NCBI GenBank assembly: GCA_965112155.1
Contig: OZ218110.1
Source of the DNA: Podarcis liolepis
Taxonomy: Eukaryota
Reading direction: 5' to 3' (one strand)
Length of the DNA: 64,000 bases
Shown here: positions 4,878 to 58,201 of the stretch, one piece after another
How the letters are laid out: each line of letters begins with the position of its first letter
Numbering within the stretch: the stretch's first letter is position 1
The notes under the pieces: generated by a model
The model's database searches: none
What the model was told of the DNA's origin: nothing
Seen by the model: only the letters and a program-made list of their open reading frames with translations
Translations under genes and position numbers: made by a program

Positions 4878-5204
4878 GTAATTTTTAATTAAGCAAAGCA
4901 TTTTGACAATCATGAGAAAATGTGTAATACATGGCTGGCCTGAGGCAGACAACTCCGGTGGTTGAATCCTATGGGGCCGCAGCTCTGCGAGCTCCACACC
5001 CACTTTTACCACTGCTGCAAGACCCCAGTAAGTGAGGCTTTGTTGGGCAATGGGGTTGGGTGCCACATGCTTGTTTTGCGTCAGATGGCAAAATGAGATG
5101 GGCTGACCCTGGCTAATATATATTTATTTCATCCAAAACACCATTACCTTGTGGCTTAGAGGGGGAAGTAGATTGCTGGGTTTCAATCTCTTCCATAGCA
5201 ATAC

Positions 5205-26052: not shown

Positions 26053-27333
26053 ACAGCGGACCTTGCCACCAAACTCTGCCAATTTGTCCTTACCCACAAC
26101 AACTTCAAATTCGGTGATGACCTGTTCCTTCAGATCAGCGGCACAGCAATGGGCACCCGCATGGCCCCACAGTATGCCAACATCTTCATGGCAGATTTAG
26201 AACAACGTTTCCTAAACTCCTACCCACTCAAACCTCTCTTGTACCTGCGATACATTGACGATATTTTTATCATCTGGACACATGGTCAACAGACCCTGGA
26301 CACCTTTCACCAGAAATTTAATGATTTTCACCCCACAATCAACCTAACAATGAATCAATCCATGCAAGAAATACATTTTTTGGACACTACTATAAAAATA
26401 CAGGATGGGCGCATAGACACCACCTTATACCGTAAACCAACTGACCGACAAATATATCTACATGCCTCTAGCTACCATCCCAAACATACCAAACAGTCCA
26501 TTGTATATAGCCAGGCACTACGTTACAGCCGCATCTGTTCCAATTCTACAGACAGAGACTCTCACCTAAGAGATCTACAGCAAACCTTCTCAGAACTAAA
26601 ATACCCAGCAGATGAAGTTAGACAACAGATCAACAGAGCCCGACTGATACCTAGAGAGAACTTGCTGCAAAACAGACCCAAAAAAGAAAATAACAGAACA
26701 CCTCTAGTCATCACATACAGCTCCCAAGTTAAAACAGTACAACACATCATCAGAGATCTACAACCTCTCCTGGACAATGACAGTTCTCTTTCTCAAGCTC
26801 TGGGAGGAAGACCTTTCATTGCCTACAGACAGCCACCCAATTTTAAACAACTCCTAACCCACAATAATACTACAACCAGGCTTAACACAGACACTGGCAC
26901 CAGAGCCTGCAATAAACCCAGATGCCAACTTTGCTGCCACATACACCCGGACAACACCATTACTGGCCCCAACAACATCACACATACCATCTCGGGACTA
27001 TTTAATTGCTCATCATCTAACACTGTGTATGCCATCAAATGCCAACAGTGTCCTTCAGCTCTCTATATTGGACAAACAGGCCAAATCTTATGCCAAAGAA
27101 TAAACAGACATAAATCTGACATCAAGAATCACAAAACAGAGAAACCAGTAGGAGAACACTTCAATCTCCCAGGACATTCTATACAAGATCTCAAAGTAGC
27201 TGTTTTACTACAAAGGAATTTCAGAAATAGACTGGAAAGAGAAGCTGCTGAATTGCAACTCATTACCAAACTTAAAACCATGGAGAGACCTGGTCTGAAC
27301 AAAGACATTGGATTCTTATCTCATTATACATGA
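26053..27333 (+). CDS. PLE RT C-terminal half plus GIY-YIG endonuclease (truncated, no native start)
   Basis: The frame stays open upstream of the 26149 ATG to the truncation point (TADLATKLCQFVLTHNNFKFG...GTAMG). Confidence 0.88.
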   Translation, partial: TADLATKLCQFVLTHNNFKFGDDLFLQISGTAMGTRMAPQYANIFMADLEQRFLNSYPLKPLLYLRYIDDIFIIWTHGQQTLDTFHQKFNDFHPTINLTMNQSMQEIHFLDTTIKIQDGRIDTTLYRKPTDRQIYLHASSYHPKHTKQSIVYSQALRYSRICSNSTDRDSHLRDLQQTFSELKYPADEVRQQINRARLIPRENLLQNRPKKENNRTPLVITYSSQVKTVQHIIRDLQPLLDNDSSLSQALGGRPFIAYRQPPNFKQLLTHNNTTTRLNTDTGTRACNKPRCQLCCHIHPDNTITGPNNITHTISGLFNCSSSNTVYAIKCQQCPSALYIGQTGQILCQRINRHKSDIKNHKTEKPVGEHFNLPGHSIQDLKVAVLLQRNFRNRLEREAAELQLITKLKTMERPGLNKDIGFLSHYT

Positions 27334-28039: not shown

Positions 28040-30107
28040 TTTATTTTAATTTTAAAAAATGTAAATTTAATACTATCTACAGTTTTAAAAGTCTGACATT
28101 TCCCCCCTCTTTATTCACTGGCACACCACCTACATTTCTCTCTTACACAACAACATTCCCTTTGAAATCTCCCATTCACTGAAGTCAATGTCATTAAAGT
28201 GTAATAATACAAGCAGTATGCATTAACTGGGGGGCGGGGGCAGCAGTATGTCTGTGGGAAACATCAAGTCAAGACTTCCAAGATGTGGAAGTAACATGTA
28301 AGCATCTTTGTACACTTAACTGAGAAATCTGACCAAAAGAAAAATAATGAAATTGCAAGCAATTAGGGAAAAAGTGGTCTTACAACCAATTCATCCTCCC
28401 ACCTTTATACTTCTCCCATGAGTAGACACTAATGTGATAAATTAATTGTTTGCATGTTGCTGACTGCACCAGAATACAAATCCAGAGTAGGCTAGCAGGA
28501 GGACCAGCAGATCAGTTGGGGCTGATCCAAGGCATTCTTCTGGCTGAGGCAACATATAAGTCGGCACTCCCTGCCACACTCATCAGCATCTTACGCCACA
28601 CCAAAGGCTAGTTTAGGCACCACAAAGCAGGTCACATTACACAAACTTGGTTTATCCTCCAATAGTGTTTGCTCACTCTCCCAATTAGCAGCTATTTTTC
28701 TTATTTTCAAGCAAGTCACCTCCACACCAAGGGGCTAACATTGGATAAGACAGTTCCATAATTATTTCTTAAATATTAAGGCAGCTAAATACTAATGGGG
28801 TGCATGAGGTGTTAGGGGAGGGACAGTACCTCTGGTGGGGGATATGTCATGCTCCATCTGGGGTAGTTTGTTGACCTTTGGTCCCCAACTTGCACTCAGC
28901 TCTCACCTGTGCCTCCTAGGAGCTGTCAGCATGTGACAATGGCCACAAACATGGAACAGCTTTGCCTGGCCAGCTAAACCAGCTGAGGGTAGGCAATGGC
29001 TCTCAAACCCTTGGTGAATTAAGGACTTCCCCCGCATGCAAAGATTTAGCGGATCTGATTCTGGCAAATAAGACCAATGGTGGGTCCAGTGGTAGAGAAG
29101 GTGGTTACTGCAGGTGCTGTAGAGGGAAGTGGGGCAGATGGGGCTTGTCAAACTGGGAAGGTAGCCCATTTAGGAGAAGGAAAACTCTGATCCTAAACCT
29201 CTGCTGCCTTGCAGGATTTCTTCAGGAGATGAAAAGCTAAGAAGTAAACACTACACAAATCTGGAGAGCAGTCCCTCCGACAATTGGATGGTGGCTTGTA
29301 TGCTATTAATAATTGTGTGTAGAGTGATATAGTGAGCTCCTGTACTAGTCTTCAGATATGTTTTTGTGGGTCTATGATACAATGGTGCTGCGTTCATCTG
29401 AGAGCCCTCCATCTTCTAATGGGACCTGACAGAATATTGAGTAGTAGTTTTCTGTTTATGGGGGGTGGGACCTGCTAACTGTGAAAGGGGCCTGCTGTTT
29501 GGTGACCTTTCTGGGGCGGGCAAAGGAACTGGGGCAAATATGTTCACACAGTTTGTGGGAAGGATGGGAGGAAAGGCACAAGTATCTGCATCACCAGTGA
29601 AAATAGTTGATCCACCCTGCCTTCTCAGGATGCATTAAGTTTCATATTTCCTTCCACATCCAGCCAAACACCCAAAAGGAAGGCTATAAGTGAATACTGT
29701 GTGCAAATAATCTGGTAGTTTAATTGAGAACCCTGAATCATTGAGACCTATAGCTTGGTGGTGAACTCCTAGGACATAGATGTGCCTGCATGTTGGCTTC
29801 TCTTTTCTGAGGTCCCTCTGAATGCATAGATGTCAGGAGAAGAGATTATGGATATAGTCAGACCTTGCCCTGAACACATTTGCAACAGATATAGAGGCTC
29901 AATGAGTGGACAGGGATTCTCTCATGACAATACAGAGGGGTCAGACAGCCTGTCATCATATGTCTTCATTTCATATTTCAGCAAAGAAATATCAGCTTCA
30001 TTTGATTATTACACAGAAGGAGTCCACCTTAAATTAAACTGCTTACTCAATATTTCTTTCTATCTTATTCTGGTACAGGTAATATGTGAATATGCCCAGT
30101 GAAAAAA

Positions 30108-31046
30108 ATGCACAATCTTACCTCCATGTCTACATTTCTGCTGCTGGGATTCTCAGACATTCGAGAACTGCAGATCTTGCACTTCTTTGTGTTCCTAGCA
30201 TTGTACATTATAGCAATCATAGGTAATCTCCTCATTGTTGCTGCAATTGTCCTTGATCACCAGCTTCACACACCCATGTACTTCTTTCTACTGAATTTGG
30301 CTATGCTGGACATCGGAACAATTTCCGTCATGGTACCCAAATCAATAGTTCTTTCCCTTCTAAACAGCAGGTTTATTTCTTATTTTGGATGTGTTGCACA
30401 AGTTTTCTTTTTTATGTTATTCGGAACATCAGATGTTGCTCTCCTAACTATAATGGCACATGATCGCTATGTTGCTATCTGCAATCCATTACAATATGAG
30501 TCAATAATGCACAAAGCAGCCTGTATTCGTATGGTAGTGATTGTGTGGACTATTTGTGTTTTATATGCTGCGTTACATACTGGGAGCACCTTTGCAAATA
30601 CCTTCTGTTCTAATGCTGTTAATCAGTTCTTTTGTGAAATCCCACCACTACTGAAGCTCTCCTGCTCTAACTTCTACCTGGTTGAAGTTGGGCTTCTTGT
30701 GCTAAGCTCTGGTATAGCACTAGGTTGTTTTGTTTTCATAATCTTAACATATATGCAGATCTTTTCTACAGTGTTAAAAATCCCCTCCGTTCATGGAAAG
30801 AAAAAAGCCCTCTCCACTTGCCTTCCTCACCTCACTGTTGTCTCTGTGTTTCTTATAAGTGGGGTGTTTGCCTATGCAAGGCCTCCTAGTGATTCTTCTT
30901 CCGATCTGGATATAGGTGTGTCTGTGATGTACACCATAATTCCTCCCACATTGAATCCATTCATCTACAGCATGAGAAACAAAGAAATCAAGACTGCTTT
31001 GTGGAAACTCTTAAATTTTGGGAAATCTTCTAAAGTTTTCTCCTGA
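30108..31046 (+). CDS. Olfactory receptor, OR14-like, 312 aa
   Basis: LHTPMYFFL, MAHDRYVAICNPLQY, NQFFCEIP, KALSTCLPH, PPTLNPFIYSMRNKEIK. Confidence 0.96.
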   Translation: MHNLTSMSTFLLLGFSDIRELQILHFFVFLALYIIAIIGNLLIVAAIVLDHQLHTPMYFFLLNLAMLDIGTISVMVPKSIVLSLLNSRFISYFGCVAQVFFFMLFGTSDVALLTIMAHDRYVAICNPLQYESIMHKAACIRMVVIVWTICVLYAALHTGSTFANTFCSNAVNQFFCEIPPLLKLSCSNFYLVEVGLLVLSSGIALGCFVFIILTYMQIFSTVLKIPSVHGKKKALSTCLPHLTVVSVFLISGVFAYARPPSDSSSDLDIGVSVMYTIIPPTLNPFIYSMRNKEIKTALWKLLNFGKSSKVFS

Positions 31047-34000
31047 GTTGTTCTGTGAAAATGGGATTTTGTGGTCTTCGGTATGAGAATGGTTTCCTTT
31101 AAATAAAGCGCCACACACATTTCAGTAACCAGCAAACATTACTTCTATCACAAATATTACCCTCTGCCCACTCTAGCCTACATTGAATTTCTTTCATCCA
31201 TCATTTTTCATATGCATAGTTTGGCTACAGTCAACCTAATATCAGCTGAGTTATAATCTACGCAGAAATCAACATGACATTCTAATACTGTCTGAACTTT
31301 ATTGATTAGGTTCCTTTTCTAAACACTGGTGTAGGCCTCGTCCCTTGCTACTACCAATAACAATGGGTGAGAATTTCACCTCAGCTCTCATTCTAAACTG
31401 AATCTATCAAATTCACACTTTCAATATACGAACTTGACCACAAATTCAGTTCTCTGAATTTTCCAATGAAGTTTGCCCATAAGCCAATGTTTTAGAAAAA
31501 TCCATATTTTCAGGGAATTTATGTAAATAAATGGATATATTAGTGAACCTAACACAAAAAATGCTTCAAAAATGTGTGCATTAGTAAAAACTGCACGTAA
31601 ATATATTTATTAGAAGATATGCACACTAAAATGCTGAGGAAATGTCATGAGAATATTTTTTTAACAGCGAATTGCTCCAAAAATTGAAAATTGAATTTAT
31701 GGTTAGAAAAAGGTTCAACTGAGATAGGACCTTTCTCTGGGACCAAAGAGAAAATGTTTTTGGACAATGTCAAGGAGTTTCAAAAGACTGGAAATTATTG
31801 CTACTTTGCTTAGAGAAATTTGTTACTTTGCATTTTGTAACATTTTATTTTGTAACTAGTTTAAAACATTTTTGAAGTAAAACTTTTTGGAATTCATTCT
31901 TGTGGTGGAGCTTATTCTCTTCTATGGTGCACAAGATCCAGAGCAGGGATCCATTCTAATATCTCTAACAAGAGGTGCTGAGGGAAGGCACATTCCTTTC
32001 TATTTATGGAGCTTTCTAACCTGCCAGCAATGGCAGAGAGATGCCAGCCGGCTGTGCCACGGTTAAATGTGCCAGTGGCCACACTCACACAGAGTTCTGA
32101 TTGGCTGGGGCTGTCCAACAAGGGCAGAACCCCAGCAACAACAACACAGCTGCCATGACGCAGGGTGAAGGCAGCAACTCTCTGCCCCCTAAGCTGGCAT
32201 ATTGTTGTGACCCAGCTGCCCGGCTGCAATGCCGCCCACTGTGAAAGGTGAGCGGACTTGTGACACATCACTATGGGAAGTTAGTTTTTAAAATGTTCCC
32301 AGGAAGCAAGATGGCTGCCTACATTGATATCTGTATCTATAACTCTTTGTTATGACATGTGGTCCTTGGAAGCACTTTATATGACTTTTTTACCCACATG
32401 ACAGTCACATTACTAGCTGCTTTGACAATTTAAAAAGAAATAAGGCAGACTCTGCATCAGCTTTTAAATACATAAATATGCAAAACAGATTCATCTCCAT
32501 ATCTTTGTTGCAATCCGCACATGGGACCCAAAGGGACAAAATGTTTACGCTCACTCCAAAATGTAGAGTGAACCAAAATTCTCTGCCATTGCCAATTCAG
32601 GCAAAACGTGCATGTAATATTTATTTGATTACATTTCTGACAAAATCAGAAGAAGCAATAATGAGGGTGAAAATTATTGTTATGAAAGTTATTGTTTGGA
32701 CACTTGGGAGCAATTTGTCAAAGTACCAAAGTGCACATCCAATTAACCTCCTTTCTACATGAGCATCTTTAAAAAGCCAGTTTACAAAGGAGCTGCTACA
32801 CAATATTCAGTCAAATCTGAAAAGCAGATGAAAGACTCTCAGATGACCCAAGGGATGCATGACCAGTCATAACCTAAAGCAGCTACCCCCCAAAAATGCC
32901 ATTTACCCACATTGAGAGCCAACTGCTCTTAAAGGGGATAGGTAAGTTTTATTTTAATTTTAAAAAATGTAAATTTAATACTATCTACAGTGATAAAAGT
33001 CTGACATTTCCCCCCTCTTTATTCACTGGCACACCACCTACATTTCTCTCTTACACAACAACATTCCTTTTGAAATTTCCCATTCACTGAAGTCAATGTC
33101 ATTAAAGTGTAATAATACAAGCAGTATGCATTAACTGGGGGGGGGGGGAGCAGCAGTATGTCTGTGGGAAACATGAAGACAAGACTTCTAAGATGTGGAA
33201 GTAACATGTAAGCATCTTTGTACACTTAACTGAGAAATCTGACCAAAAGAAAAATAATGAAATTGCAAGCAATTAGGGAAAAAGGGGTCTTACAACCAAT
33301 TCAGCCTCCTACCATTATACTTCTCCCATGAGTAGACACTGATGTGATAAATTAATTGTTTGCATAAGCTGACTTAAACAGAAAACAAATCCAGAGTAGG
33401 CTAACAGGAAGACCAGAAGGTCACTTGGGGCTGATCCAAGGCATTTTTCTGGCTGCGGCAACATATAAGTCGGCACTCCCTGCGACACTCAATTCCCTAC
33501 TTAAAGACCACGAACGAGGCAGCATCTTACGCCACACCAAAGGCTAGTTTAGGCACCACAACACGATCACATGACACACACTTGGTTTATCCTCCGATAG
33601 TGTTTGCTCACTCTCCCAATTAGCAGCTATTTTTCTTATTTTCAAGCAAGTCACCTCCTCACCAAGGGGCTAACATTGGGCAAGACAGTTCCATAATTAT
33701 TTCTTAAATACTAAGGCAGCTAAATACTGATGGGGTGCATGAGGTGTTAGGGGAGGGGCAGTACCTCTGGTGGGGGATATGTCATGCTCCTTCTGGGGTA
33801 GCTTGTTGACCTTTGGTCCCCACCCTGCACTCAGCTCTCACCTGTGGCTCCTAGGAGCTGTCAGCATGTGACAGTGGCCACAAACTGGGAACAGCTTTGC
33901 TTGGCTAGCTAAACCAGCTGTGGGTAGCCAATGGGTCTCAAACTCTTGGTGAATTAAGGACTTATCCTGCATGCAAAGATTTAGTGGATCTTAATCTGGC

Positions 34001-35052
34001 GGATTGAGCAAACAAGACCAATGGTGGGTCCAGTGGTAGAGAAGGTGGTTTCTGCAGGTGCTGTAGAGGGAAGTGGGGCAGATGGGGCTTGTCAAACTGG
34101 GAAGGTAGCCCATTTAGGAGAAGGAAAACTCTGATCCTAAACCTCTGCTGCCTTGCAGGATTTCTTCAGGAGATGAAAAAGCTAAGAAGTAAACACTACC
34201 CAAATCTGGAGAGCAGTCCCTCCAACAATTGGATGGTGGCTTGTACACTATTAATAATTGTGTGTAGAGTGATATAGTGAGCCCCTGTACTAGTCTTCAG
34301 ATATGTTTATGTGGGTCTATGATACAATGGTGCTGCATTCATCTGAGAGTCCTCCATCTTCTAATGGGACCTGACAGAATATTGAGTAGCAGTTCTTTGT
34401 TTATGGGGGGTGGGACCTGCTAACTGTGAAAGGGGCCTGCTGTTTAGTGACCTTCCTGGGGCAGGCAGAGGAACTGGGGCAAATGTGTCAACACAGTTTG
34501 TGAGAAGGATGGGAGGAAAGGCACCTGTATCTGCATCACCAGTGAAAATAGTTGATCCACCCTGCCTTCTCAGGATGCATTAAGTTTCATATTTCCTTCC
34601 ACATCCAGCCAAACACCCAAAAGGAAGGCTATAAGTGAATACTGTGTGCAAATAATCTGGTAGTTTAATTGAGAACCCTGAATCATTGAGACCTATAGCT
34701 TGGTGGTGAACTCCTAGGACATAGATGTGCCTGCATGTTGGCTTCTCTTTTCTGAGGTCCCTCTGAATGCATAGATGTCAGGAGAAGAGATTATGGATAT
34801 AGTCAGACCTTGCCCTGAACACATTTGCAACAGATATAGAGGCTCAATGAGTGGACAGGGATTCTCTCATGACAATACAGAGGGGTCAGACAGCCTGTCA
34901 TCATATGTCTTCATTTCATATTTCAGCAAAGAAATATCAGCTTCATTTGATTATTACACAGAAGGAGTCCACCTTAAATTAAACTGCTTACTCAATATTT
35001 CTTCCTATTTTATTCTGGTACAGGTAATATGTGAATATGCCCAGTGAAAAAA

Positions 35053-35991
35053 ATGCACAATCTTACCTCCATGTCAACATTTCTGCTGCTGGGATTCTCA
35101 GACATTCGAGAACTGCAGATCTTGCACTTCTTTGTTTTCCTAGCATTGTACATTATAGCAATCATAGGGAATCTCCTCGTTGTGGTTGCAATTGTCCTTG
35201 ATCACCAGCTTCACACACCCATGTACTTCTTTCTACTGAATTTGGCTATGCTGGACATTGGAATAATTTCCGTCATGGTACCCAAATCAATAGTTCTTTC
35301 CCTCCTAAACAGCAGGTTTATTTCTTATTTTGGATGTGTTGCTCAAGTTTTCTTTTTTATGTTATTTGGAACATCAGATTTTGCTCTCCTAACTATAATG
35401 GCACATGATCGCTATGTTGCTATCTGCAACCCATTACAATATGAGTCAATAATGCACAAAGCAGCCTGTATTCGTATGGTAGTGATTGTGTGGACTATTT
35501 GTGTTTTATATGCTGTGTTACATACTGGGAGCACCTTTGCAAATACCTTCTGTTCTAATGCTGTTAATCAGTTCTTCTGTGAAATCCCATCATTACTGAA
35601 GCTCTCCTGCTCTAACTTCTACCTGGTTGAAGTTGGGCTTCTTGTGCTAAGCTCTGGTATAGCACTAGGTTGTTTTGTTTTCATAATCTTAACATATATG
35701 CAGATCTTTTCTACAGTGTTAAAAATCCCCTCCGTTCATGGAAAGAAAAAAGCCCTCTCCACTTGCCTTCCCCACCTCACTGTTGTCTCTGTGTTTCTTT
35801 TAAGTGGGTTGTTTGCCTATGCAAGGCCTCCTAGTGATTCTTCTTCCGATCTGGATATAGGTGTGTCTGTGATGTACACCATAATTCCTCCCACATTGAA
35901 TCCATTCATCTACAGCATGAGAAACAAAGAAATCAAGACTGCTTTGTGGAAACTCTTAAATTTTGGGAAATCTTCTAAAGTTTTCTCCTGA
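35053..35991 (+). CDS. Olfactory receptor, OR14-like, 312 aa (recent duplicate of 30108)
   Basis: Same motifs; 8 amino-acid differences from 30108-31046. Confidence 0.96.
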   Translation: MHNLTSMSTFLLLGFSDIRELQILHFFVFLALYIIAIIGNLLVVVAIVLDHQLHTPMYFFLLNLAMLDIGIISVMVPKSIVLSLLNSRFISYFGCVAQVFFFMLFGTSDFALLTIMAHDRYVAICNPLQYESIMHKAACIRMVVIVWTICVLYAVLHTGSTFANTFCSNAVNQFFCEIPSLLKLSCSNFYLVEVGLLVLSSGIALGCFVFIILTYMQIFSTVLKIPSVHGKKKALSTCLPHLTVVSVFLLSGLFAYARPPSDSSSDLDIGVSVMYTIIPPTLNPFIYSMRNKEIKTALWKLLNFGKSSKVFS

Positions 35992-37254
35992 GTTGTTCTG
36001 TGAAAATGGGATTTTGTGGTCTTCGGTATGAGAATGGTTTCCTTTAAATAAAGCGCCACACACATTTCAGTAACCAGCAAACATTACTTCTATCACAAAT
36101 ATTACCCTCTGCCCACTCTAGCCTACATTGAATTTCTTTCATCCACCATTTTTCATATTCATAGTTTGGCTACATTCAACCTAATATCAGCTGAGTTATA
36201 ATCTATGCAGAAATCAACATGGCATTCTAATACTGTCTGAACTTTATTGATTAGGTTCCTTTTCTAAACACTGGTGTAGGTCTCATCCCTTGCCACTACC
36301 AATAACAATGGGTGAGAATTTCACCTCAGCTCTCATTTTAAACTGAATCTATCAAATTCACACTTTCAATATACGAACTTAACCACAAATTCAGTTCTCT
36401 GAATTTTCCAATGAAGTTTGCCCATAAGCCAATGTTTTAGAAAAATCCATATATTCAGGGAATTGAATTTATGGTTAGAAAAATGTGCAACTGAGATAGG
36501 ATCTTTCTCTGGGACCAAAGAGAAAATGTTTTTGGACAATGTCAAGGAGTTTTAAAAGATTGGAACTTATTGCTACTTTGCTTAGAGAAATTTGTTACTT
36601 TGCATTTTGTAACATTTTATTTTGTAACTAGTTTAAAACATTTTTGCAGTAAAACTTTTTGGAATTCATTCTTGTGGTGGAGCTTATTCACTTCTATGGT
36701 GCACAAGATCCAGAGCAGGAAATTCCACTCTAATATCTCTAACAAGAGGTGCTGAGGAAACAGGAAGGCACATTCCTTTCTGTTAGTGCTTTGACTTGGG
36801 AAGCCTCACACAGATCCCATGTCAACTTGGGGAAATCCAGAATCCACCCTTCTGCCTCCCTCAAGGCACCCTGCTTTGGCTCAGGATGAATTTGGTATTT
36901 GTCTGAATTCACTGCACACATCCTTCATATTAAGTAATCCATGCTCTTTTACAAGACAAATATCACATAAATTGCAGGTCTCCAGCAGGATGGAGGACCC
37001 AGAGTGCTTCTACATAATACAGTGGGGTTTTCTTATTTCTTGGACAATAGCACAATTGGAGGTTACCAGAGTCTGTGTGACGGTAGCCAAGCTATCCCTG
37101 TCCATTAAAGACAATAGTTGTGCACCAGCTGAAGCTTGGCATAAGCACTTCAAGCCACTGACTCCTGATCCCAAGTGATTACGAACCTGCTCCTTTAAGT
37201 AACATTACTCCACCTGGTTGAACCAGTTAGAATATTCAAGGGCAGAAGACTGAA

Positions 37255-39062: not shown

Positions 39063-39100
39063 GTATGAGCTTTCGTGTGCATGCACACTTCTTCAGATAC
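39063..39100 (-). ncRNA. Minimal type I hammerhead ribozyme (intact core)
   Basis: GUAU-CUGAAGA-A-GUGUGCAUGCACAC-GAAA-GC-UC-AUAC: stem I GUAU/AUAC, palindromic stem II, AGCU in place of stem III. Confidence 0.85.
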
Positions 39101-39558
39101 ACTGAAACATTAGTTGCCAGATCCTTCTATATAGTGAGAAGGTGGGGAGGGGTGTTACTCAGAAGGGTGGTGGGAATGGGAGATAGGCAGATAGCTGAGA
39201 GAGCCTGTTGATGACTCTTAACGACTGTAATAGGTCTTACAGGAAAAGGCAAGGGGTGAGAAGGTGAGAAATGGTTTAGTCATGTATAGTGAGATAAGAA
39301 TCCAATGTCTTTGTTCAGCCCAGCTCTCTCCATGGTTTTAAGTTTGGTAATGAGTTGTAATTCAGCAGCTTCTATTTCCAGTCTATTTCTGAAATTCCTT
39401 TGTAGTAAAACAGCTACTTTGAGATCTTGTATAGAATGTCCTGGGAGATTGAAGTGTTCTCCTACTGGTTTCTCTGTTTTGTGATTCTTGATGTCAGATT
39501 TATGTTCGTTTATTAAAACCATTAACGGTTTATTAAAACCGCTATCTGCCTATCTCCC

Positions 39559-39596
39559 ATATCTGAAGAAGTGTGCATGCACACGAAAGCTCATAC
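39559..39596 (+). ncRNA. Minimal type I hammerhead ribozyme (intact core, stem I shortened by junction)
   Basis: AUAU-CUGAAGA-A-GUGUGCAUGCACAC-GAAA-GC-UC-AUAC. Confidence 0.82.
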
Positions 39597-40368: not shown

Positions 40369-41186
40369 CTTACACTGCATTTTGACCTAAACAATTTCTC
40401 AGAACTGAGGTTGATGAATTGAAAGAAAAATAATACAAGCATGTTACATTAACTAGCATTCCTCTATCTGTGGAATGTATCAGAATCAGACTCGGAAGAA
40501 AAGGTGGTAACACTCAAGTATCTTTGTACATTTAAGTTGGAAACATAACAAATCTAAGAATACTGCAAATTGTGATTCCACATACCCACCCATCTCCAGT
40601 AGGGAAGAAGTGGTCTCAGATTAAAATCAGTCTCTCAACAGTATATTGCTCACAGGGCATAGGCAGATTTCTGATGAACTATTTGTGGATATTAGCTGGC
40701 TGAAGAAATGTTTGCACCAGTTGTGTTTTTTAAAAAATCCAGATTAGGACTTCCACCCAGTCAATATATATTGTTTACATTGTGTGTCTTTAGTCTGTCC
40801 ACCTTATCTGGCATCCTGCATAATTGGAGCCAGCAACTGATTGGTGAGCTCCTATGCACATATAAATGTATGCTTGTAACTTCCCTTTCTGATGCTTCAC
40901 TGAATGCATAGATGCCAGGGGAAGGATTTTAGGGAGTATAGACTCACCACACCTTGCCTACATTTGCAAATGGTGTGTGTGGGGGGCACAAGTGGACAGG
41001 GATTATCTGATGAGAAAACAGAGGGGACAACAATTATTGCTGATTATGCAAAGGAATATTTGGTGGACTTGATTTCTAGATCAAAGCAGCTCAGTTTAAA
41101 TTAAATTGATGAATCAATAATTGTACACTAATAGTCCTTATCCTCTTGCTTGTACAGGTAACATGTGGATAAGTGCTGCGAACATA

Positions 41187-42128
41187 ATGCACAATCTTAC
41201 CTCCATGCCTGCATTTCTGCTGCTGGGATTCTCAGATATTCGAGAACTACAGATCTTGCACTTCTTTGTGTTCCTAGCCTTGTACTTGATGGCAATAATA
41301 GGGAATCTTCTAATTGTCATTGTCATTGTCCTTGATCACCACCTTCATACCCCTATGTATTTCTTTCTAATGAATTTGGCCATCATGGACCTTGGAACAG
41401 TTTCAGTTATGGTGCCCAAATCAATGGCTATTTCCCTTTACAACAACAGGTTAATTTCTTATTTTGGATGTGTTGCTCAGGTTTTCTTTTTACATTTATT
41501 TGGAATATCAGATTTTGCTCTCCTAACTATAATGGCACATGACCGTTACGTTGCTATTTGCAGACCACTGCAATATGAGACAATTATGCACAAAGGAGCC
41601 TGTATACGGATGGTAGCCATTGGGTGGATCACAGGCTTTCTTGCTGCCATGTTACATACTGGGAGCACCTTTGGCAATACCTTCTGTGGTAATTCTGTCA
41701 ATCAGTTCTTCTGTGAAATCTCAAAATTACTGAAGATCTCTTGCTCCGACTTTTACTTAGTTGAAGTTCGGGTTCTTGTGATAGCCTTTATTATATCAGT
41801 AGGATGCTTCATTTTCATCATCATAACATACATGCAGATCTTTTCTACAGTGCTCAGAATACCTTCTTTAGATGGTCAGAAAAAAGCCCTCTCCACTTGC
41901 ATTCCCCACCTCACTGTTGTCTCTTTGCTTATGTTCACTGGTGCCTTTGCCTACGCAAGGCCACCCACCGATTCTTCTTCTGATCTAGATATAGTTTTTG
42001 CTGTGATATATACCATAATTCCTCCCACATTAAATCCATTTATTTACAGTATGAGAAACAAAGAAATTAAGACTGCTTTGTGGAAACTGTTCTATAAAAA
42101 TAGTGTTGTATACTGTTCTATATGTTAA
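41187..42128 (+). CDS. Olfactory receptor, OR14-like, 313 aa (in-frame upstream ATG at 41163 could add 8 aa)
   Basis: LHTPMYFFL, MAHDRYVAICRPLQY, KALSTCIPH, PPTLNPFIYS. Confidence 0.95.
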   Translation: MHNLTSMPAFLLLGFSDIRELQILHFFVFLALYLMAIIGNLLIVIVIVLDHHLHTPMYFFLMNLAIMDLGTVSVMVPKSMAISLYNNRLISYFGCVAQVFFLHLFGISDFALLTIMAHDRYVAICRPLQYETIMHKGACIRMVAIGWITGFLAAMLHTGSTFGNTFCGNSVNQFFCEISKLLKISCSDFYLVEVRVLVIAFIISVGCFIFIIITYMQIFSTVLRIPSLDGQKKALSTCIPHLTVVSLLMFTGAFAYARPPTDSSSDLDIVFAVIYTIIPPTLNPFIYSMRNKEIKTALWKLFYKNSVVYCSIC

Positions 42129-42342: not shown

Positions 42343-45300
42343 AATCTGTGATACAAATCATTCCACAATTCCTCCACCTCATTTTTCATATAATTCATCA
42401 TCAATTGATCACGCATTTCACCATCTTCTCAAGACAGTGTATTTCACTTACAAGTGATACATGTATACGACAATCGAATGTAACCATATTAACAAATATT
42501 CCATGTAAACATTTAGTTAGAAAAAGAAAATTGAAGAACATAAAATGTATCATTTCCCCAAAATGTTCTGAACAGAACATGACCTTGTGGGGCATTTTGT
42601 TCTTGATCATTCTACAATACTATAAAATTTATTTTTGCATAAAAATGTCATCTGGCAATTTTCTTTCTTTTATTTTTTAATATTGAATAGTAGAACCATC
42701 TAATTTGAACTTTTGCTGTCCAGTGGGTTGTGTTTGCGATAAATTATCCCTCCAAGAGCTGCATGCCGGAGCTTGGCCTCCACTCTTAGTCTATTATACT
42801 CATACTACACACACCGGCGGACATGCAGCACACAAACCTACAGACATGGACACACACTGATCATAAAAAGAAAACAAGAACACAAGCAGCCCCCCAATTG
42901 ACCCAGTGAGACAGTTCCCTTCATGCGCAGATAGCACTTGTGCAGAGCAAATTTTCACACATCATAGCACAGGACTGCTTGGAGATTGGGGTGACAATAT
43001 GATAAAATTTATACATTCAGAAATTACTAAGCAAAATATTAAATTATTATATGCTATTACGACAGAGATGTGCATAACATTATGCAGAACATTAACACAA
43101 CAAATCTTTAGCATCTCCACTCTTTTCAGTTCACACAACCATCATTTCTAATGTATATGAACACCCTGAATGACAGGAACCCACTGGAAACTAAAAGAAA
43201 AATACAAGGAACAATTACTGACCACATACCCCATCATTCATTAATGGAGGCCATTCCACATGTACTATACTGTGAAGGCTTGAGATCAGTTTACTTGTGA
43301 GCTTGCTATACCCCATTTATGCCCATCTGACTGTTTTTGTCTGTGGAACTGGCAATGTTACAGGTGCCACATACCGGTAATTTAGGACTAAAAAAGAAAA
43401 GAAACTGTTTTTAACTGTTTTTATTAATAATTATATATTTCTTGTTAGCCATGTGGAGGCTTTATTACAATCAAGTGGTATATAAACTTTGTTAACTGAA
43501 ACAAATAAACAGAGGTTATTCCTACAGCAACTGGGTCAGATAGGTCAGTCTGGGACTGACTATCCCAAAGTCACACAATATGTTTTATGACTGATTTTAT
43601 CCATGGTCTCTCACAACCTACTCCACTTAATATTCCTCCATTTTCCCCCCACATACTGGGAAAATGACATAGAAGTGAGTAAACTGGGGGGATGGAAGTA
43701 ATCTTTTCTGATAGGTCTGGAAATGTATTGCAGATAGAGGCACATGACGGCAAATAAATAAATAAAAAATGAAAAATGGAATGGTAGTTAGAATTCTCTT
43801 CAGTTAGAATTACTGCAGCCAGGTTTTGCACTAAAGGAGTCATATTGAAGGGCAGCCCCATGTATAATGCAATATAGCAATTCAGCCAGGATGTAACCAG
43901 GAAATGGAGAGTTTGTGAAAGCCTATCTCTATCTAGAAATGGCTACAGTATTTGGATATAACTAAATAAATAGCCATAGAGTGATCATTTTTCATGTACT
44001 GAAGCACATGTTGTATCTGTTGTTGTTTGTTTGTTTCTACTACCAAAGTCGAAGCAGCAAAATTGCCTTGAGGATTCAGATCAGCTCTGCTGCGCTCTTG
44101 GGAGCAGGATCCCAAGATGCCTAAACAGAATTAACTAACACTCCCTCCCATGCCTGCTGGCACTAATAGCTGATGCTACATTTAGTGACTATTACCTTTA
44201 AACATGGTGTCTTTTTTAAAGGGAAAAAATACTCGGTTACATGTTTGGGGGTACGTGCCAAGGGAAGGTTGAAAGTGCTTGGTTGAGAAGGTACATGGGC
44301 TCTCGCATCTGAAGCATATCATACCCTATGAATTTTACACTTGAAGGTATTTCAATTGCTTGCCAACTTTTTCTAACTGGATTATAATTTTGTTCGATTA
44401 AATCCAGACTTGGTGATGCTATTAGTAGACCCATTGACTGCAGAGGTTCAGTTGCAAGTATATGACTAAATGTGAGTCCAACCCAATACGTTTGATTATA
44501 GTTGTATAATTGTGAGATCTGGTACGTCACATTGAATGGGAAATTGTGACAAAAATGGAAGTGCACAAGCCAAGTTATAAAAGACGATATAAGTATTTTA
44601 TTATTCATGTGATAGTAATAACCGCAAAACCAATACTGTGTGGTGAGCTTTTATGTACATGTATGTGTATGTAGGCTTCTCTTTTGGATGTTCCATCAAA
44701 CGCACAGATATTAGAAGAAGGATTGAGGGGGTATAGTCTATACCCTCCAACATTCCTCATATGAAACTAGGGATATTCTGTTTACATAAGTGTCATTCCA
44801 CCCCATGCCCATTAGACAAAGTCAAGTGAACACCTCAAGCAGCAAATGCTGGGGATTGGTGAAGCAGCAGTGAGGTTGGGAGGTTAGGGCGGCGTGTACA
44901 AGGTGCCCTGCCCTGTATTAACTCATTGTATTCTTATAAGCTGTTTAGGACCATGCCCTCACAATGCGACATACAAACAAGAGCAAGGCAAGATATAAAG
45001 GTATAATAGCTACATGACCAAACATACAACATACTTTAAGAAGCTGTCCTGTAAAACCCAATTATGACCTAAGTTAAAGGTAGCATTAAACATAAAGGTC
45101 TTCACCGCTTGCCTAAGTGCCTGTACACATGGGGTAAGGCACAAGTCAGTAGGAAGGGAGGGTATGAGCTCATGATATAATAAGCCAGAAAATTAACAGT
45201 GAAATATTTGATTTTCCTATCCCTTATTTTTGCAGTCCCAAGCAGAAACCGACCTACCAAACCTTCAGGGAGCCTCTGTTCATGCTGCGTGTTCTGTCTT

Positions 45301-45626
45301 CAATTTACGGAGGTTACCTAATTTGTGCAGGCCTGCTGCAAATTATCCCAAATTAAAAGCATGTGCATGTGTGCATAGTGATAACAAAGTCAGTTTATAC
45401 GAGCTCCAATTCCAGTTCTTACCCGGGTGCTGCTGCAAGCCACTGCCAGACTCAGGAGCACATATATATAATGGGTATAACAGTAACCTGCCATTTGTTT
45501 TGGCTAAAAGAAGTAGATTGATTTTGAGCACATATCTCTGAAATTATTTGATGATATGTGTTGTGCTCTTAACTCTTAATATTGTATAGGTCACATGCAA
45601 GGACATGCAGATTGTTCTGAGTAAAC

Positions 45627-46130
45627 CAGCGACGTAGCGTGGGTTGTCAGCACTCGGGGCAAGGCAAGTAATTTGCGCCCCCTAACCCCTAACCTGCCAC
45701 CGCTGCCAGCTTCTTCTTGCTGCTGCCTGGGCTGGGGTATTTACGGTAAGGTAGCCACGGCGGCGGCAGCGGTGGGTCCATGTCAGGTGATCTGAGGCGA
45801 GTTGCCGCTGGCGCTGCCGCCCAAACGATGCCGCTTGCCTGGAGGAGGAGGGAAGAGAGGCGAGGAAAATGCAACATGGCCCAACAGCTGCAGCAGCAGC
45901 GGCGGGGCTGTGAGGAGGGGCTGCCTGGCGTGCCCTCCGTGGCCCTGACGTGTGGGGACCGCGGCGAGCGCTGAGAGCCGCTGCCAGCTCGTCGGTTCCG
46001 CGAGACATGGGGCTCTGCTACAGCCTGCGCCCGAGGCTCTTCGGCGACTCTGGAGGCGGCGAGTGCGCCCCCCCCAGATGTTGCGCCCGGTGTGGCTGGC
46101 CCCCCCTGCACCCCCCACGCTATGCCACTG
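45627..46130. mobile_element. Non-autonomous hAT element carrying captured host sequence (Pack-TIR)
   Basis: 17-bp imperfect TIRs CAGCGACGTAGCGTGGG / CCCACGCTATGCCACTG; perfect 8-bp TSD GAGTAAAC at 45619-45626 and 46131-46138; CpG-rich interior. Confidence 0.9.
45695..46060 (+). pseudogene. GNAL: Captured fragment of GNAL XL-isoform exon 1 (CpG-island 5' region plus first ~15-18 codons)
   Basis: ATG at 46007 in strong Kozak context (GACATGG) encodes MGLCYSLRPRLFGDSGG. I recall human XLGalpha-olf starting MGLCYSLRPLLFG (12/13 identical). Confidence 0.75.
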
Positions 46131-46494
46131 GAGTAAACAAAACTGCTCTGCAAGAAAGCTCACAATGCAAGTTGAAAATCAGTGTTGCTGGGAGCAATTG
46201 GGACAATCCTGGATAAAATGAGAAGCCAAAATGACTTCTGTAATTCCAGGAGTGTCCTGGGAAAATTGTGACACTTGAAGGCTATGCTAGCCTCCCCACA
46301 CCATGCACAAATTTCAAATAGGTGCTGGGGGGTGGGGTTCAGTGACAATCCAAGGGGGAAAGCATAGAATGCATGGTGGATTTGACTGTTTAAAGGAACT
46401 TTGTTTAAATTAAACGGGTTAATAAATATTTATAAACAAACAATCCTATCTTCTTCCTTGTACAGGTAATGTGTGAACACGTTGTGTGAATAAA

Positions 46495-47433
46495 ATGTCC
46501 AATCTTACCTCCATGTCTACATTTCTGCTGTTGGGTTTCTCAGACATTCGAGAACTACAGATCTTGCACTTTTTTGTTTTCTTGTTGTTGTACTCGGTGG
46601 CAATAATGGGGAATTTTCTCATTATTGTAGTAGTTGTCTTCGATCACCACCTTCACACCCCCATGTACTTCTTTCTCATGAATTTGGCCATGATGGACCT
46701 TGGAACAATTTCTGTCATGGTACCCAAATCGATGGCTATTTCTCTTTTAAACAGCAGGTTCATGTCTTATTCTGGATGTGTTGCTCAAGTCTTTTTTTCA
46801 TATTTATTTGGAACATCAGATCTTGCCCTCCTAACTATAATGGCACATGACCGCAATGTTGCTATTTGCAACCCACTCCAATATGAGTTAATTATGAACA
46901 GAGGAGCCTGTATACGGATGGTAGTCATTGTATGGATTATCAGTCTTCTTAATGCCACCCTACATGTTGGTTGCACCTTTGCAAACATCTTCTGTTCTAA
47001 TGCTGTCAATCAATTCTTCTGTGAAATCCCAAGGTTACTGAAGCTTTCCTGCACTGACTTTTACTTAGTTGAAGTTGGGTTTCTTGTGCTAGGATGGAGT
47101 ATAGGGCTCGGTTGCTTCATTTTCATCATCATAACATACATTCAAATCTTTTCTACAGTGCGTAGAATCCCTTCTGTTCATGGTCAGAAAAAGGCCCTTT
47201 CCACTTGCCTGCCTCACCTCATGGTTGTCTCTGTGTTTATGTTCACTGGAGTATTTGCTTATGCAAAGCCACCCACAGATGCTGCTTCTAATGTGGACAT
47301 AGCTTTTGCTGTGGTCTATACCATCATTCCTCCCACATTGAATCCATTCATCTACAGTATGAGAAACAAGGAAATAAAAACTGCTATGTGGAAACTCTTA
47401 GATTATGGGCATTCTTCTAAAAATATATTTTGA
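46495..47433 (+). CDS. Olfactory receptor, OR14-like, 312 aa (DRY>DRN)
   Basis: LHTPMYFFL, MAHDRNVAIC, KALSTCLPH, PPTLNPFIYS; acceptor at 46464-46465. Confidence 0.93.
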   Translation: MSNLTSMSTFLLLGFSDIRELQILHFFVFLLLYSVAIMGNFLIIVVVVFDHHLHTPMYFFLMNLAMMDLGTISVMVPKSMAISLLNSRFMSYSGCVAQVFFSYLFGTSDLALLTIMAHDRNVAICNPLQYELIMNRGACIRMVVIVWIISLLNATLHVGCTFANIFCSNAVNQFFCEIPRLLKLSCTDFYLVEVGFLVLGWSIGLGCFIFIIITYIQIFSTVRRIPSVHGQKKALSTCLPHLMVVSVFMFTGVFAYAKPPTDAASNVDIAFAVVYTIIPPTLNPFIYSMRNKEIKTAMWKLLDYGHSSKNIF

Positions 47434-49050
47434 GTTTTTAAAAATGGGATTGTATATTCAATGTGAATGTTTTGATATACAGTTTTTAAACTAGCACTAG
47501 AACCTTGGGGTGGACATTTGCTTTGCATGTAGGAAGTTCCTGCTGTAACCCCTGGCATCTGCAGGTGGAGGAATGAATGATTCCATATCTGAAGCCATAG
47601 GGAGCCACTACCAATCAGTGTCAACAATACTGAGCTAAATGGACCAATGGGTTGATTCAGTGTAAAGTAACCTCCTGTGTTCCTCACTCTGCAATGCAAA
47701 TAGTCTTATAATTTATTCACCTTATTCTCCATGCCATTCATTGCCATTTGTTCATCCTCTTCACCCTTTCCCCCCAAAAAATGTGTTTTACTTACTACTG
47801 ATACAAGTATAGTACAATTAGATATACTGTAATTATATCAGCAAATACTATTTCCAATGTCTTTAGTAAGAAAATGAAAGTTCAAAAGCATAAAATGTAT
47901 GTCCCCAAAATAATTATCAATTTTATTATATTTTTGCTTGCCACTCCAATCTCTGAGAAGTGTGAGATTCCAGGGGTTCCAGGAATTTATCCAGGGTTAA
48001 ACTCACAGTACCTAGGAACGTAACCTGAACTCGTGGTGCGTTCAGACGTAACCCCCACTTAATGGAGGTTGCCTATATAGAGCAATCAAATGTAACAAAT
48101 ATTCATTCTAATAAGAAAAAGTGTTGAAAAATGTGTAATTTTCCCATCAGAATTTTCAGTTTTACTGTAGTGTAGACAGAATCATACATTTTGATTGTGA
48201 TCATTCTAAATTATAAAACTTGTTTTTTGATAAAATAATATATGATGTTGCTATATTCCTTCTCTTATTTTGATGATATTAATTGCTAGAAACATTTCCC
48301 TTGCCATATTCCATCTTCCCATCAGTCACCCTGGAGACTGCCTCTACCTCTGGAGTTGTTAGGATCCACCTCTGGCTCAGTCCATTGGGATTTCTTTCCA
48401 CTAAATAGTGCCATTCACCACTCTAAGAGATACTGCTGTCAAAAACCCAGCCACCCTTGCAGTTACTTCCAGGCTAACATAATTAACAGGAAACTAAAAT
48501 ATTATCTTAAAGATATCAAAATAAAACATTACCAAAGGAAATCAAATGCAAAATGCACATTTAAAACAGCACAATTAGGAAGATAATATTATCATAGATA
48601 CCACGCTCTCAGTATCCAGTATCCAGTAACTAGTTGTAATTGCACACTCTAACCACGATGTGCATTCCCTGATGAACCAATTTATCATAGTTGATTCTTC
48701 CATGAAATAATCCATCATGGAATGTGGTATTCTGCCCCCACACCCCGTTCACACAAACTCTCACCTTCGCATTTTTCCAGCACTTTTATTACAGGTAATC
48801 CTAATGTCCAGTTTGCACATTGTGGTCAAATATGCAAACATTATAAACTAACTAACTAACTAAATAAATCATACCCTCACAGCAAACTCATGAAGTACAT
48901 TAGACTGAGAGGCAGCGACTCAGTGAGTTTCATAAGCTGGGTGAAGGGGATAATCTTTTCCTATAGGTCTGGAAATTTATTGGGTTTCTTGTTAGCAGTC
49001 CTATGTAGCACTTTTAAGATTCACCAATTAAGTTTGCTAACCTGTACATA

Positions 49051-52587: not shown

Positions 52588-53139
52588 TATAGCAGATGAG
52601 GGTTTGAATTAGGCCACAAGAGATGGGACAGCTCTACAAGTGACATTAATAGCAGCTTCCTTTGTGGGGCAAAGCAACTAAAGGAAGTAGTTAAAAAAAC
52701 CCCAGATAGCTTCATGTTACTGCAAGATTACTTAGAGTCCCCCAAACATGCAGACTGAGCAGAAATAGAAAATATTAGTTAATATATAAAGTTTGGAGTG
52801 AAATCAGTGTTTGAGATACTTTAGATACTTTATATAATAACAGATATGCAAGCTTCAATTTACAAATGGGCTATTTTGGCATAATCTTTAATCTCAATTG
52901 TTTTTACACTACTTGATTAGCAAAAGAATGGGGAATATATAATTAAATTTCAGGAAGCATTTTTTTAAAAAATGTTCTATATTCTGATTTTAATCTGTTG
53001 GGATCAGCCCAGAGTGGCTGGGGAAACTTAGCCCAATGGATGGGGTATAATAAATAAATGATATGATTAGCTCATTAATCATTATTAACATGTTTTAGCT
53101 TCTTCCTCCAACAGAGAGAATGCAAATACTGAAGAAAAA

Positions 53140-54075
53140 ATGAGCAATCTTACTTCCATGTCAACGTTTCTGCTGTGGGAATTCTCAGATTTCCGAGAAC
53201 TACAGATCTTATACTTCTTTCTGTTCTTAGGATTGTACTTGACCACCATGGCTGGAAATCTTCTCATTATTGCTGCAATAGTGCTAGACCATCACCTCCA
53301 TACACCAATGTACTTTTTCCTAACTAATTTGGCAATGATGGACATGGGCTCTGCTTCTGTCATGATGCCCAAATCATTAGCCAATTCCATCATGAACAGC
53401 AGATCTATTTCTTACTCTGGGTGTGTGGCCCAGGTTTTCTTCTATATGTTCTTTGTAGCAGCAGATTTTGCCATTCTAACAGTAATGGCACATGATCGCT
53501 ATGTTGCCATCTGCAACCCGTTACAGTATGAGACAATTATGCACAAAGGAGCTTGTATTCAGATGACCCTCATTGTGTTAATTGCTAGTCTTCTTCATGC
53601 CATGTTACATACTTGTAGCACTTTTGCAATCACCTTCTGTTCAAATGACGTCCATCAGTTCTTCTGTGAAATTCCAACATTACTGAAGCTCTCCTGCTCT
53701 AATATCTACCTTGTCGAAGTAGGGGTTATTGTGTTAGGGTGTTGCCTGGGACTAGGATGCTTCATGTTCATTATCATAACATACATGCAGCTATTTGCTA
53801 CAGTGCGCAGAATTCCTTCAGTACATGGTCAGAAAAAAGCCCTCTCCACTTGCCTTCCCCACCTCACTGTTGTCTCTTTGTTTATGGGCACTGCACTCTT
53901 TGCCTATGCAAAGCCTCCCACTAATGCTTCTTCTGATCTGGATATAGCTTTTGCTGTGATCTATACTGTAATTCCTCCTATGTTGAATCCATTCATCTAT
54001 AGCATGAGAAACAAAGAAATCAAGACTGCTTTGTGGAAACTCTTAGATTTTGGGCATTCTTCTAAAAATAGATAA
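53140..54075 (+). CDS. Olfactory receptor, OR14-like, 311 aa
   Basis: LHTPMYFFL, MAHDRYVAICNPLQY, HQFFCEIP, KALSTCLPH, PPMLNPFIYS. Confidence 0.96.
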   Translation: MSNLTSMSTFLLWEFSDFRELQILYFFLFLGLYLTTMAGNLLIIAAIVLDHHLHTPMYFFLTNLAMMDMGSASVMMPKSLANSIMNSRSISYSGCVAQVFFYMFFVAADFAILTVMAHDRYVAICNPLQYETIMHKGACIQMTLIVLIASLLHAMLHTCSTFAITFCSNDVHQFFCEIPTLLKLSCSNIYLVEVGVIVLGCCLGLGCFMFIIITYMQLFATVRRIPSVHGQKKALSTCLPHLTVVSLFMGTALFAYAKPPTNASSDLDIAFAVIYTVIPPMLNPFIYSMRNKEIKTALWKLLDFGHSSKNR

Positions 54076-57299: not shown

Positions 57300-58201
57300 T
57301 CATGCTTTTCTTCTTATTATCTGTTCCCTGTTATTCAGCTCAGGCTTCAACACAATGATGTAACATTTGGGGGCAAATATGCACCCCAGCAACCCAGCAC
57401 TAGAGGCTAAAATAGAAAAGATCTCCACAGCTACCATGTACTTTCCCTTGGAGCTCAGATAGGATGGGATAAAGGATAACCAAACACTGCAAAAGACCAA
57501 CATGCTGAAGGTGATGAATTTGGCTTCGTTGAAACTGTCAGGTAACTTTCTAGCAAGGAAAGCCACACTGAAGCTGATAATGGCAAGAAAGCCCATATAG
57601 CCTAAAACACAGTAGAAGAAAGTCAGAGATCCCTCATTGCACTCCAATATAAGTTCTTCTCTTACTGAATGAATGTCAACATCTGGGAATGGGGGAGAAG
57701 TTACCAACCACACAAAGCAAATGCCTGCTTGGATGAATGAGCAGGAAAGAACAATGGAGTTCGCTAATGACTTCCCCACCCAGTTCCTCATGCTGGATCC
57801 TGGTCTGGTGGCCATGAAAGCCAGGACCACTGTGGTGGTTTTGGCCAACACACAAGAAACAGCTACTGAGAATATGATTCCAAAAGCAGTTTGTCGGAGA
57901 AGACATGTCACCTTCTGTGGCTGGCCAATGAATAGCAATGAACAAAGGAAGCAGAGCAAGAGGGAGACAAGGAGAGTGTAGGTGAGGCCCCGGTTGTTGG
58001 CTTTGACAATGGGAGTGCTGCGGTGCTTCAGAAATGCTGCTAGCACCAGAGCTGTGATCAAGGAAGAGAAAAGGGCAAAAAGGGCTAAAGCGACCCCCAG
58101 TGGTTCTTTGAAAGACAAGAAGGAAGCCAGTCTGGGAACACAGGAATCTTGGTTCTTGCTTGGATAGCTTACGTCACTGCATTTGGAACAGTCATTCATA
58201 T
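57300..58201 (-). CDS. V2R-2 exon 6 (7TM)
   Basis: DMNDCSKC...TPIVKANN...[18 protein letters not shown]...; 902 nt. Confidence 0.93.

Follow-up and report, generated by a model that had tools for sequence, protein, structure and literature searches.

We identified a 504-bp mobile element just upstream of an olfactory receptor gene of the lizard Podarcis liolepis, within a 64-kb stretch of contig OZ218110.1 (hereafter the window; all coordinates are positions in it). The element occupies 45627-46130 and is flanked by a perfect 8-bp target-site duplication (TSD), GAGTAAAC. When its anatomy and composition are placed beside contigs from other sequencing runs, it is probable that this is a Pack-type non-autonomous hAT element built on the arms of an abundant family of MITEs (miniature inverted-repeat transposable elements), which gained a CpG-island-like cargo, was amplified with it, and was recently inserted at this locus, where it would now be inert. 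The likeliest source of the right-hand part of the cargo would be the first exon of the extra-large (XL) isoform of the G-protein gene GNAL. The parts of the element and its nearest neighbor are as follows, with the basis of each assignment in parentheses.

45619..45626, no strand: left copy of the TSD, GAGTAAAC (repeat scan and empty-site contig)
45627..45643, plus strand: left terminal inverted repeat (TIR), CAGCGACGTAGCGTGGG; the family majority is CAGTGGCGTAGCGTGGG (repeat scan)
45627..45688, plus strand: left arm, common to a very abundant MITE family (contig depth and departure points)
45689..46059, plus strand: CpG-island-like cargo of 371 bp (382 bp with 46070 as its end; composition and contigs)
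45699..45796, plus strand: sub-segment of the cargo that is absent from some other copies (contig joints and depth)
45985..46059, plus strand: ATG-bearing module of the cargo (breakpoint in the contigs of other copies)
46007..46216, plus strand: 69-codon open reading frame (ORF) plus stop (ORF translation)
46060..46130, plus strand: right arm of the MITE family (contig depth and joints)
46114..46130, minus strand: right TIR, reverse complement CAGTGGCATAGCGTGGG (repeat scan and family comparison)
46131..46138, no strand: right copy of the TSD, GAGTAAAC (repeat scan and empty-site contig)
46486..47433, plus strand: intact olfactory receptor ORF, a neighbor outside the element (Pfam 7tm_4)

Evidence that this unit moved comes from the comparison of filled and empty sites. 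Logan contigs from two DNA runs and two RNA runs were compared with 45200-47500. In run X1 (organism A), the depth of one 1124-nt contig is that of single-copy sequence (68.5), and its alignment covers 45200-45618 followed by 46131-46529; it omits 512 bp, and eight letters fit on either side, which identifies it as an empty site that has a single GAGTAAAC and lacks a footprint. The filled site is represented in run X2 (organism B), where two contigs enter the element, one from each flank (45200-45651 and 46129-46529), and no contig skipping the element was seen. As the empty site lies precisely at the TSD, the unit is an insertion rather than a repeat that arose by chance. The flanks of the two runs are about equally close to the reference, with 5 mismatches in 818 positions for X1 and about 5 in 850 for X2, and it follows that the difference between the alleles is recent. 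The insertion behaves as a segregating or very recently fixed difference and is probably still polymorphic. Within the window, no paralogous empty site was found, the paralogues of the olfactory receptor aligning only from 46374 on, short of the insertion site.

These results place the original prediction, which was made from the letters of the window alone, on firm ground as far as the insertion is concerned. It had proposed a 504-bp element with 17-bp TIRs and a perfect 8-bp TSD, all of which are found at exactly those positions, and had named an empty site with a single GAGTAAAC as a check, which another sampled animal (run X1) now provides. The two TIRs, of 17 bp each, agree at 14 of 17 positions. 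In a scan of the whole window for 8-bp direct repeats abutting an inverted repeat of at least 14/17, with the partners 100-3000 bp apart, the matches were the TSD and TIR pair of the element, a palindromic tandem array at 9439-10406, and an inverted Penelope-like structure at 39078-39581, and nothing else in the 64 kb. Composition-preserving shuffles of the sequence (n = 20) gave no TSD and TIR pair. The tandem array, which has a 148-bp period and contains the palindromic 8-mers TGCGCGCA and TGAGCTCA, was the source of most spurious pairs in the scan.

The arms of the element can be assigned to a family through their depth. Over the arm bins 45585-45738 and 46047-46200, summed contig depth is about 10^5-10^6 (left ~2e6, right ~4.8e6), compared with 11-68 in the unique flanks, and the arms consequently represent a dispersed family of very high abundance. 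G stands at 45632 in nearly all other copies, where the window has A, most have C at 46123, where the window has T, and at many clipped ends ...CAGTGG precedes 45633; the family ends are a perfect CAGTGGCGTAGCGTGGG on both sides. Canonical copies match the window as far as 45688 and again from 46071/46072, through joints that skip 379-383 bp, while further joints reach 46068-46072 and loose ends lie before 46059 and before 46071/46072. The loose ends behind 45688 read GTGGATTTGCGCCCCCTAACC..., and the canonical interior consists of a few letters or of tandem units of ~22 bp (TGTGGATTTGCGCCCCCTAACC). The left arm itself closes with a single ~22-bp subterminal unit of the family (..ATTTGCGCCCCCTAACC), and a joint that goes back 33 reveals the same subterminal repeat. 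A second subfamily has sequence in common with the window from 46060. The GC-rich inner ends of both arms contain TGCGCCCCC, at 45674 and 46064. The 22-bp internal unit of the family contains telomere-like CCCTAA motifs (GCCCCCTAACCCCTAACC), as does the left arm at its inner end (45672-45695).

The ends also fit the consensus YARNG, with CAGTG in the family; this copy has CAGCG at its left end and CAGTG at its right end. Together, the 8-bp TSD, the CAGTG ends, and the subterminal repeats are consistent with a MITE of the hAT superfamily, presumably mobilized by a hAT transposase, and the earlier assignment to a non-autonomous element of hAT type agrees with the TSD length and the CAGTG-type ends. 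No papers containing the TIR string were found.

Among RNA reads over the arms, 87% continue into unlike sequence, which indicates that this RNA comes from other copies. In run X23, the RNA reads on the arms are strand biased (first mate minus 109-223, plus 28-47), as are those on the canonical junction (108 versus 3). Thousands of arm copies would be expected in both orientations, and the bias could be caused by a few highly expressed host transcripts, by an orientation bias inside genes, or by transcription of the element.

Between these arms, the interior is markedly different from its surroundings. Over 45689-46070 (382 bp), the GC content is 0.68 and the CpG observed/expected (o/e) ratio 0.78, compared with a GC content of 0.39 and ratios of 0.19-0.27 in the 2-kb flanks. 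The interior exceeds the thresholds of Gardiner-Garden and Frommer (>200 bp, GC >0.5, CpG o/e >0.6), which bears out the predicted CpG-island-like interior in an AT-rich locus. Because canonical copies carry a short-repeat interior instead, the interior is foreign to the canonical family, as had also been proposed, and the word cargo is apt. No Pfam domain, transposase domains included, was detected in the ORFs of the cargo; this, combined with the differing interior of canonical copies, rules out that the interior derives from a transposase gene. A 154-aa ORF on the minus strand of the cargo had no protein match in a collection that appears to be without lizard transposon ORFs, and Rfam models returned only sub-threshold chance matches over 45400-46500.

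The cargo is also repeated elsewhere in the genome. Run X1 is without this insertion, yet 27-69 distinct contigs cover the listed cargo positions in it, and all X1 contigs with cargo must therefore derive from other loci. At 46051, these contigs reach at least 49 nt each way and so cross the junction between cargo and right arm. A 422-nt contig of run X18 spans 45669-46096, and hence both junctions; its alignment contains 18 mismatches and 13 gap letters. Relative to single-copy sequence, summed cargo depth is ~1000-5000x in X1 and 550-900x in X2, a measure that is not a copy number. The cargo is present in dozens of distinct copies, and hundreds or more are possible. As copies with the same junctions lie at other loci, the chimera was mobilized and amplified after the capture. 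Two further parts of the original prediction can be retained on this basis: the spread of the cargo in many copies with the same arms is seen in the X1 and X18 contigs, in which the TSDs of the other copies are not visible, and transposition of the whole unit after the gain of the cargo is supported by the empty site in X1 and by the identical junctions of arm and cargo in other copies.

Variation among these copies shows that the cargo is modular. Some copies join the left arm straight to ~45797 (joints from 45682 to 45797, from 45694 to 45797, and from 45698 to 45789), and depth in the bin 45739-45815 is about 4-fold below that of the following cargo bins. Fourteen X1 contigs have other sequence before 45985, and in 37 the interior ahead of 46059 differs. 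The sequence CCGCTGCCAGCT, a 12-bp direct repeat located at 45700 and 45978, straddles the 45985 breakpoint, which suggests a microhomology-mediated rearrangement. Within the segment 45699-45796, a donor-like CG/GTAAGG at 45746/45747 (45746-45752) could end the captured exon of a second source.

The rightmost of these modules offers a potential link to a known gene. It consists of a 22-nt leader, an ATG in Kozak context, codons 1-17, and two bases of codon 18. The ATG (46007) is accompanied by G at both -3 and +4, in line with the strong Kozak context claimed for it earlier, and opens a 69-codon ORF that starts MGLCYSLRPRLFGDSGGGE, runs through the right arm into the flank, and stops at 46214-46216. 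The N-terminus of human GNAL isoform 1 (XL) would read MGLCYSLRPLLFG. On that assumption, the start of the ORF, MGLCYSLRPRLFGDSGGG / MGLCYSLRPRLFG..., would match GNAL-XL at 12 of 13 positions from the ATG, and the ATG module would then probably derive from GNAL, the source that the original prediction had proposed for the cargo.

Published descriptions of GNAL are compatible with such a source. The gene has an alternative, longer upstream first exon, and the XL exon is common to vertebrates (PMC5896119); the alternative first exons, along with their promoters, are placed in separate CpG islands by PMC2602793, which cites Corradi et al. 2005. As the XL exon is common to vertebrates and the insertion is polymorphic in a lizard, the direction of transfer, should this assignment be right, would be from gene to transposon. 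No homologue was found among proteins 0.55-1.75 times the length of the 69-aa ORF, a range that excludes full-length GNAL. With the first 30 aa of the ORF as query, phmmer returned 0 matches among 1.84 billion representatives, a result that is uninformative because a match of 13-18 residues is near the reporting limit and also because the cluster representatives may be without the XL exon. A search of the PDB with the ORF gave 0 matches, and the peptide is absent from the supplements of PMC5896119. In metagenome collections with little or no lizard DNA, neither an exact 24-mer from the ATG module nor a 21-mer from the left arm occurred.

Several observations weigh against a Pack-type hAT element with GNAL cargo. 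Protein and full-text literature searches for MGLCYSLRP returned no sequence containing it. At most 18 codons would be GNAL derived, with no exon end or donor after them, and the module would hold at most a 5' fragment of the GNAL-XL first exon, not the complete exon with its splice donor. The depth of the cargo in X1 would be unusually large for a Pack element, although this is summed depth and not copy number. Other copies break at 45797, 45985, and 46059, and the cargo may be a mosaic of several sources. As for the hAT assignment, GAGTAAAC has the A at position 7 of the hAT target nTnnnnAn and is without the T at position 2 (one site), and neither an autonomous hAT with the ends of the element nor a further copy of these ends was seen within the 64-kb window.

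It could accordingly be argued that the element is a mobile subfamily of hAT type whose interior came from some other CpG-rich source, such as the 5' end of another gene or an older part of the family, and that the resemblance to GNAL is due to an error in the assumed GNAL-XL sequence or to chance. That no search result ties the ORF to GNAL speaks for such an origin, as do the modularity of the cargo in other copies and its high repetition, which would be expected of the family's own sequence. We nevertheless consider this explanation unlikely, since a 12/13 match at a Kozak ATG in CpG-island DNA is improbable by chance, if MGLCYSLRPLLFG is correct, and canonical members carry a different, short-repeat interior, with no transposase domain in the ORFs of the cargo.

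A scheme for the origin of the cargo can be proposed. An element of the MITE family would have been broken, either by excision with subsequent gap repair or at a stalled replication fork, and synthesis would have switched to an ectopic CpG-rich template before returning, such that ~375 bp replaced the repeat interior. The TGCGCCCCC motif in the GC-rich inner ends of the arms could offer microhomology to CpG islands. The chimera would have kept both ends, and a hAT transposase acting in trans could then have cut and pasted it to many loci; one such event would have inserted a copy in the AT-rich intergenic DNA of the window, duplicating GAGTAAAC. The likeliest source of the right-hand 75 bp of the cargo would be the CpG-island first exon of GNAL-XL, while the remaining cargo may be the 5' region of GNAL-XL or other captured pieces. 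This is the scheme of gap filling or FoSTeST that has been proposed for animal Pack-TIRs, which are mostly hAT and, when multicopy, favor GC-rich cargo (PMC8277862).

The state of this particular copy bears on whether it could have acquired a role at its present location. At 14 of the 18 positions at which it differs from the great majority of copies, the majority letter restores a CpG, which here has been lost to TpG or CpA. This decay suggests germline methylation in the lineage of this copy, as opposed to a protected, active CpG island. Cut-and-paste elements carry old mutations to new sites, and CpG decay is therefore compatible with a recent insertion. RNA depth over the unique flanks and the receptor gene was zero in both RNA runs, which, as their tissues are unspecified, is weak evidence of silence. 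The original prediction had suggested that a neuronal CpG-island promoter fragment was being spread; spread of the cargo stands, and spread of a neuronal promoter is weakened by the CpG decay and by the zero RNA depth at the locus. This copy is most likely an inert, methylated passenger.

The olfactory receptor ORF downstream (46486-47433) encodes 315 aa with a Pfam 7tm_4 match (E 2e-42), and the ATG at 46495 is probably its true start. It could be speculated that the cargo has been co-opted as a new promoter or first exon for this receptor, which begins 348 bp downstream of the element, possibly with a chimeric transcript. The ATG module and the receptor share the same orientation, the composition is CpG-island-like, and the polymorphism of the insertion would permit allele-specific effects. 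Such a role is nonetheless very improbable given the zero RNA depth over the flanks and the receptor in the two RNA runs, the end of the cargo ORF at 46214-46216, 270 bp short of the receptor ORF, the loss of 14 or more CpGs compared with the majority of the family, and the intact state of paralogous receptors that are without the element. Because dispersed copies of the family are very numerous and those of the cargo subfamily number at least dozens, a copy within an olfactory receptor cluster needs no special explanation. The position beside the receptor looks like a coincidence, and the pairing of Golf with an olfactory receptor carries no weight; the caution expressed in the original prediction, that this adjacency may be chance, is the better reading of a family dispersed so widely.

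One could also suppose that the filled site is ancestral, that the empty allele of X1 arose by precise excision, and that the element is old at the locus. The differences from the family majority, at least 18 in number, could suggest age, but the age of a sequence does not date its insertion. As hAT excisions usually leave footprints, the clean empty allele, with exactly one GAGTAAAC, is better explained as the pre-insertion state, and we find this history marginally less credible still than co-option. The idea that there is no transposon at all, just chance direct and inverted repeats around a native CpG island, has in its favor the imperfect TIR (14/17) and is of negligible probability, refuted by the empty site exactly at the TSD and at odds with both the huge repetition of the arms elsewhere and the shuffled sequences, which gave no such pair.

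The wider window is a mixed chemoreceptor cluster, with seven olfactory receptor ORFs and exons of type-2 vomeronasal receptors. Four olfactory receptor paralogues, at 30029-31068, 34974-36013, 41061-42091, and 53137-54073, are 78-82% identical to the ORF at 46486-47433. Homology among the paralogues starts only 80-110 bp upstream of the ORF, and their upstream regions have therefore been replaced or are fast diverging. ORFs of type-2 vomeronasal or class C receptors (ANF_receptor, 7tm_3) are located at 4062-4892 (plus strand), 10882-11781 (plus strand), and 57300-58199 (minus strand). A 394-aa ORF at 26149-27333 (plus strand) has weak reverse transcriptase and GIY-YIG matches, consistent with a Penelope-like retroelement.

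The lizard element is the same kind of element as the multicopy Pack-TIRs of animals, from which it differs in its apparent copy number, its polymorphism, and the start codon that it carries in CpG-island DNA. A survey of 100 animal genomes identified 370 Pack-TIRs, only 4 of them multicopy, and its main text contains no lizard (Tan et al. 2021, PMC8277862). The closest counterpart, one of these 4, is found on three chromosomes of Xenopus tropicalis: Pack-hAT-N8_XT, with 291 bp of the CAPSL 5' untranslated region as its cargo (PMC8277862). Both are non-autonomous hAT elements with a foreign interior of a few hundred base pairs that transposed as a unit to several loci; the copies of Pack-hAT-N8_XT each have their own TSD, with the 5' end of a host gene as cargo. 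Unlike Pack-hAT-N8_XT, the lizard element is represented by dozens of contigs with cargo (summed depth suggests far more), is polymorphic at this site, and contains a start codon in CpG-island DNA, and its parental locus is putative.

Other systems share some of these features. The Helitrons of vespertilionid bats brought fragments of promoters and first exons to high copy number, but Helitrons are rolling-circle elements without TIRs or TSDs that capture by read-through, a mechanism different from that of the lizard element. Plant Pack-MULEs prefer GC-rich 5' gene ends. In rice and other plants, they are TIR elements that amplify GC-rich 5' gene fragments and can add ATG exons and promoters (PMC5861414); as members of the Mutator superfamily, they have long TIRs and TSDs of 9-11 bp, in contrast to the 8-bp TSD and 17-bp hAT-like TIR of this vertebrate element. 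The Ds1-type and heterogeneous Ds elements of maize (PMC3260210) are likewise short non-autonomous hATs, moved in trans, that have nothing but the termini and subterminal repeats in common with the autonomous element; their interiors are unrelated, and that of Ds1 contains no recognizable host gene fragment.

Capture of gene fragments by cut-and-paste transposons is well documented in plants, whereas animal cases are regarded as rare and nearly always confined to a single copy (PMC8277862). The multicopy cargo and the polymorphic insertion described here indicate that duplication of promoter- or first-exon-type DNA, apparently by a hAT element, has recently operated in a squamate. The presence/absence allele beside an olfactory receptor could serve for testing the effect of a transposed CpG island on the expression of a neighboring gene. 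It is conceivable, though rather doubtful, that an active or very recently active hAT MITE family of this lizard repeatedly captures CpG-island promoter and first-exon fragments of many genes and raises the chimeras to copy numbers in the hundreds or thousands. If true, such repeated capture would be a vertebrate counterpart of the plant Pack-MULEs at genome scale, scattering polymorphic, ATG-bearing CpG islands, and the subfamily with GNAL cargo would be one lineage of such a family.

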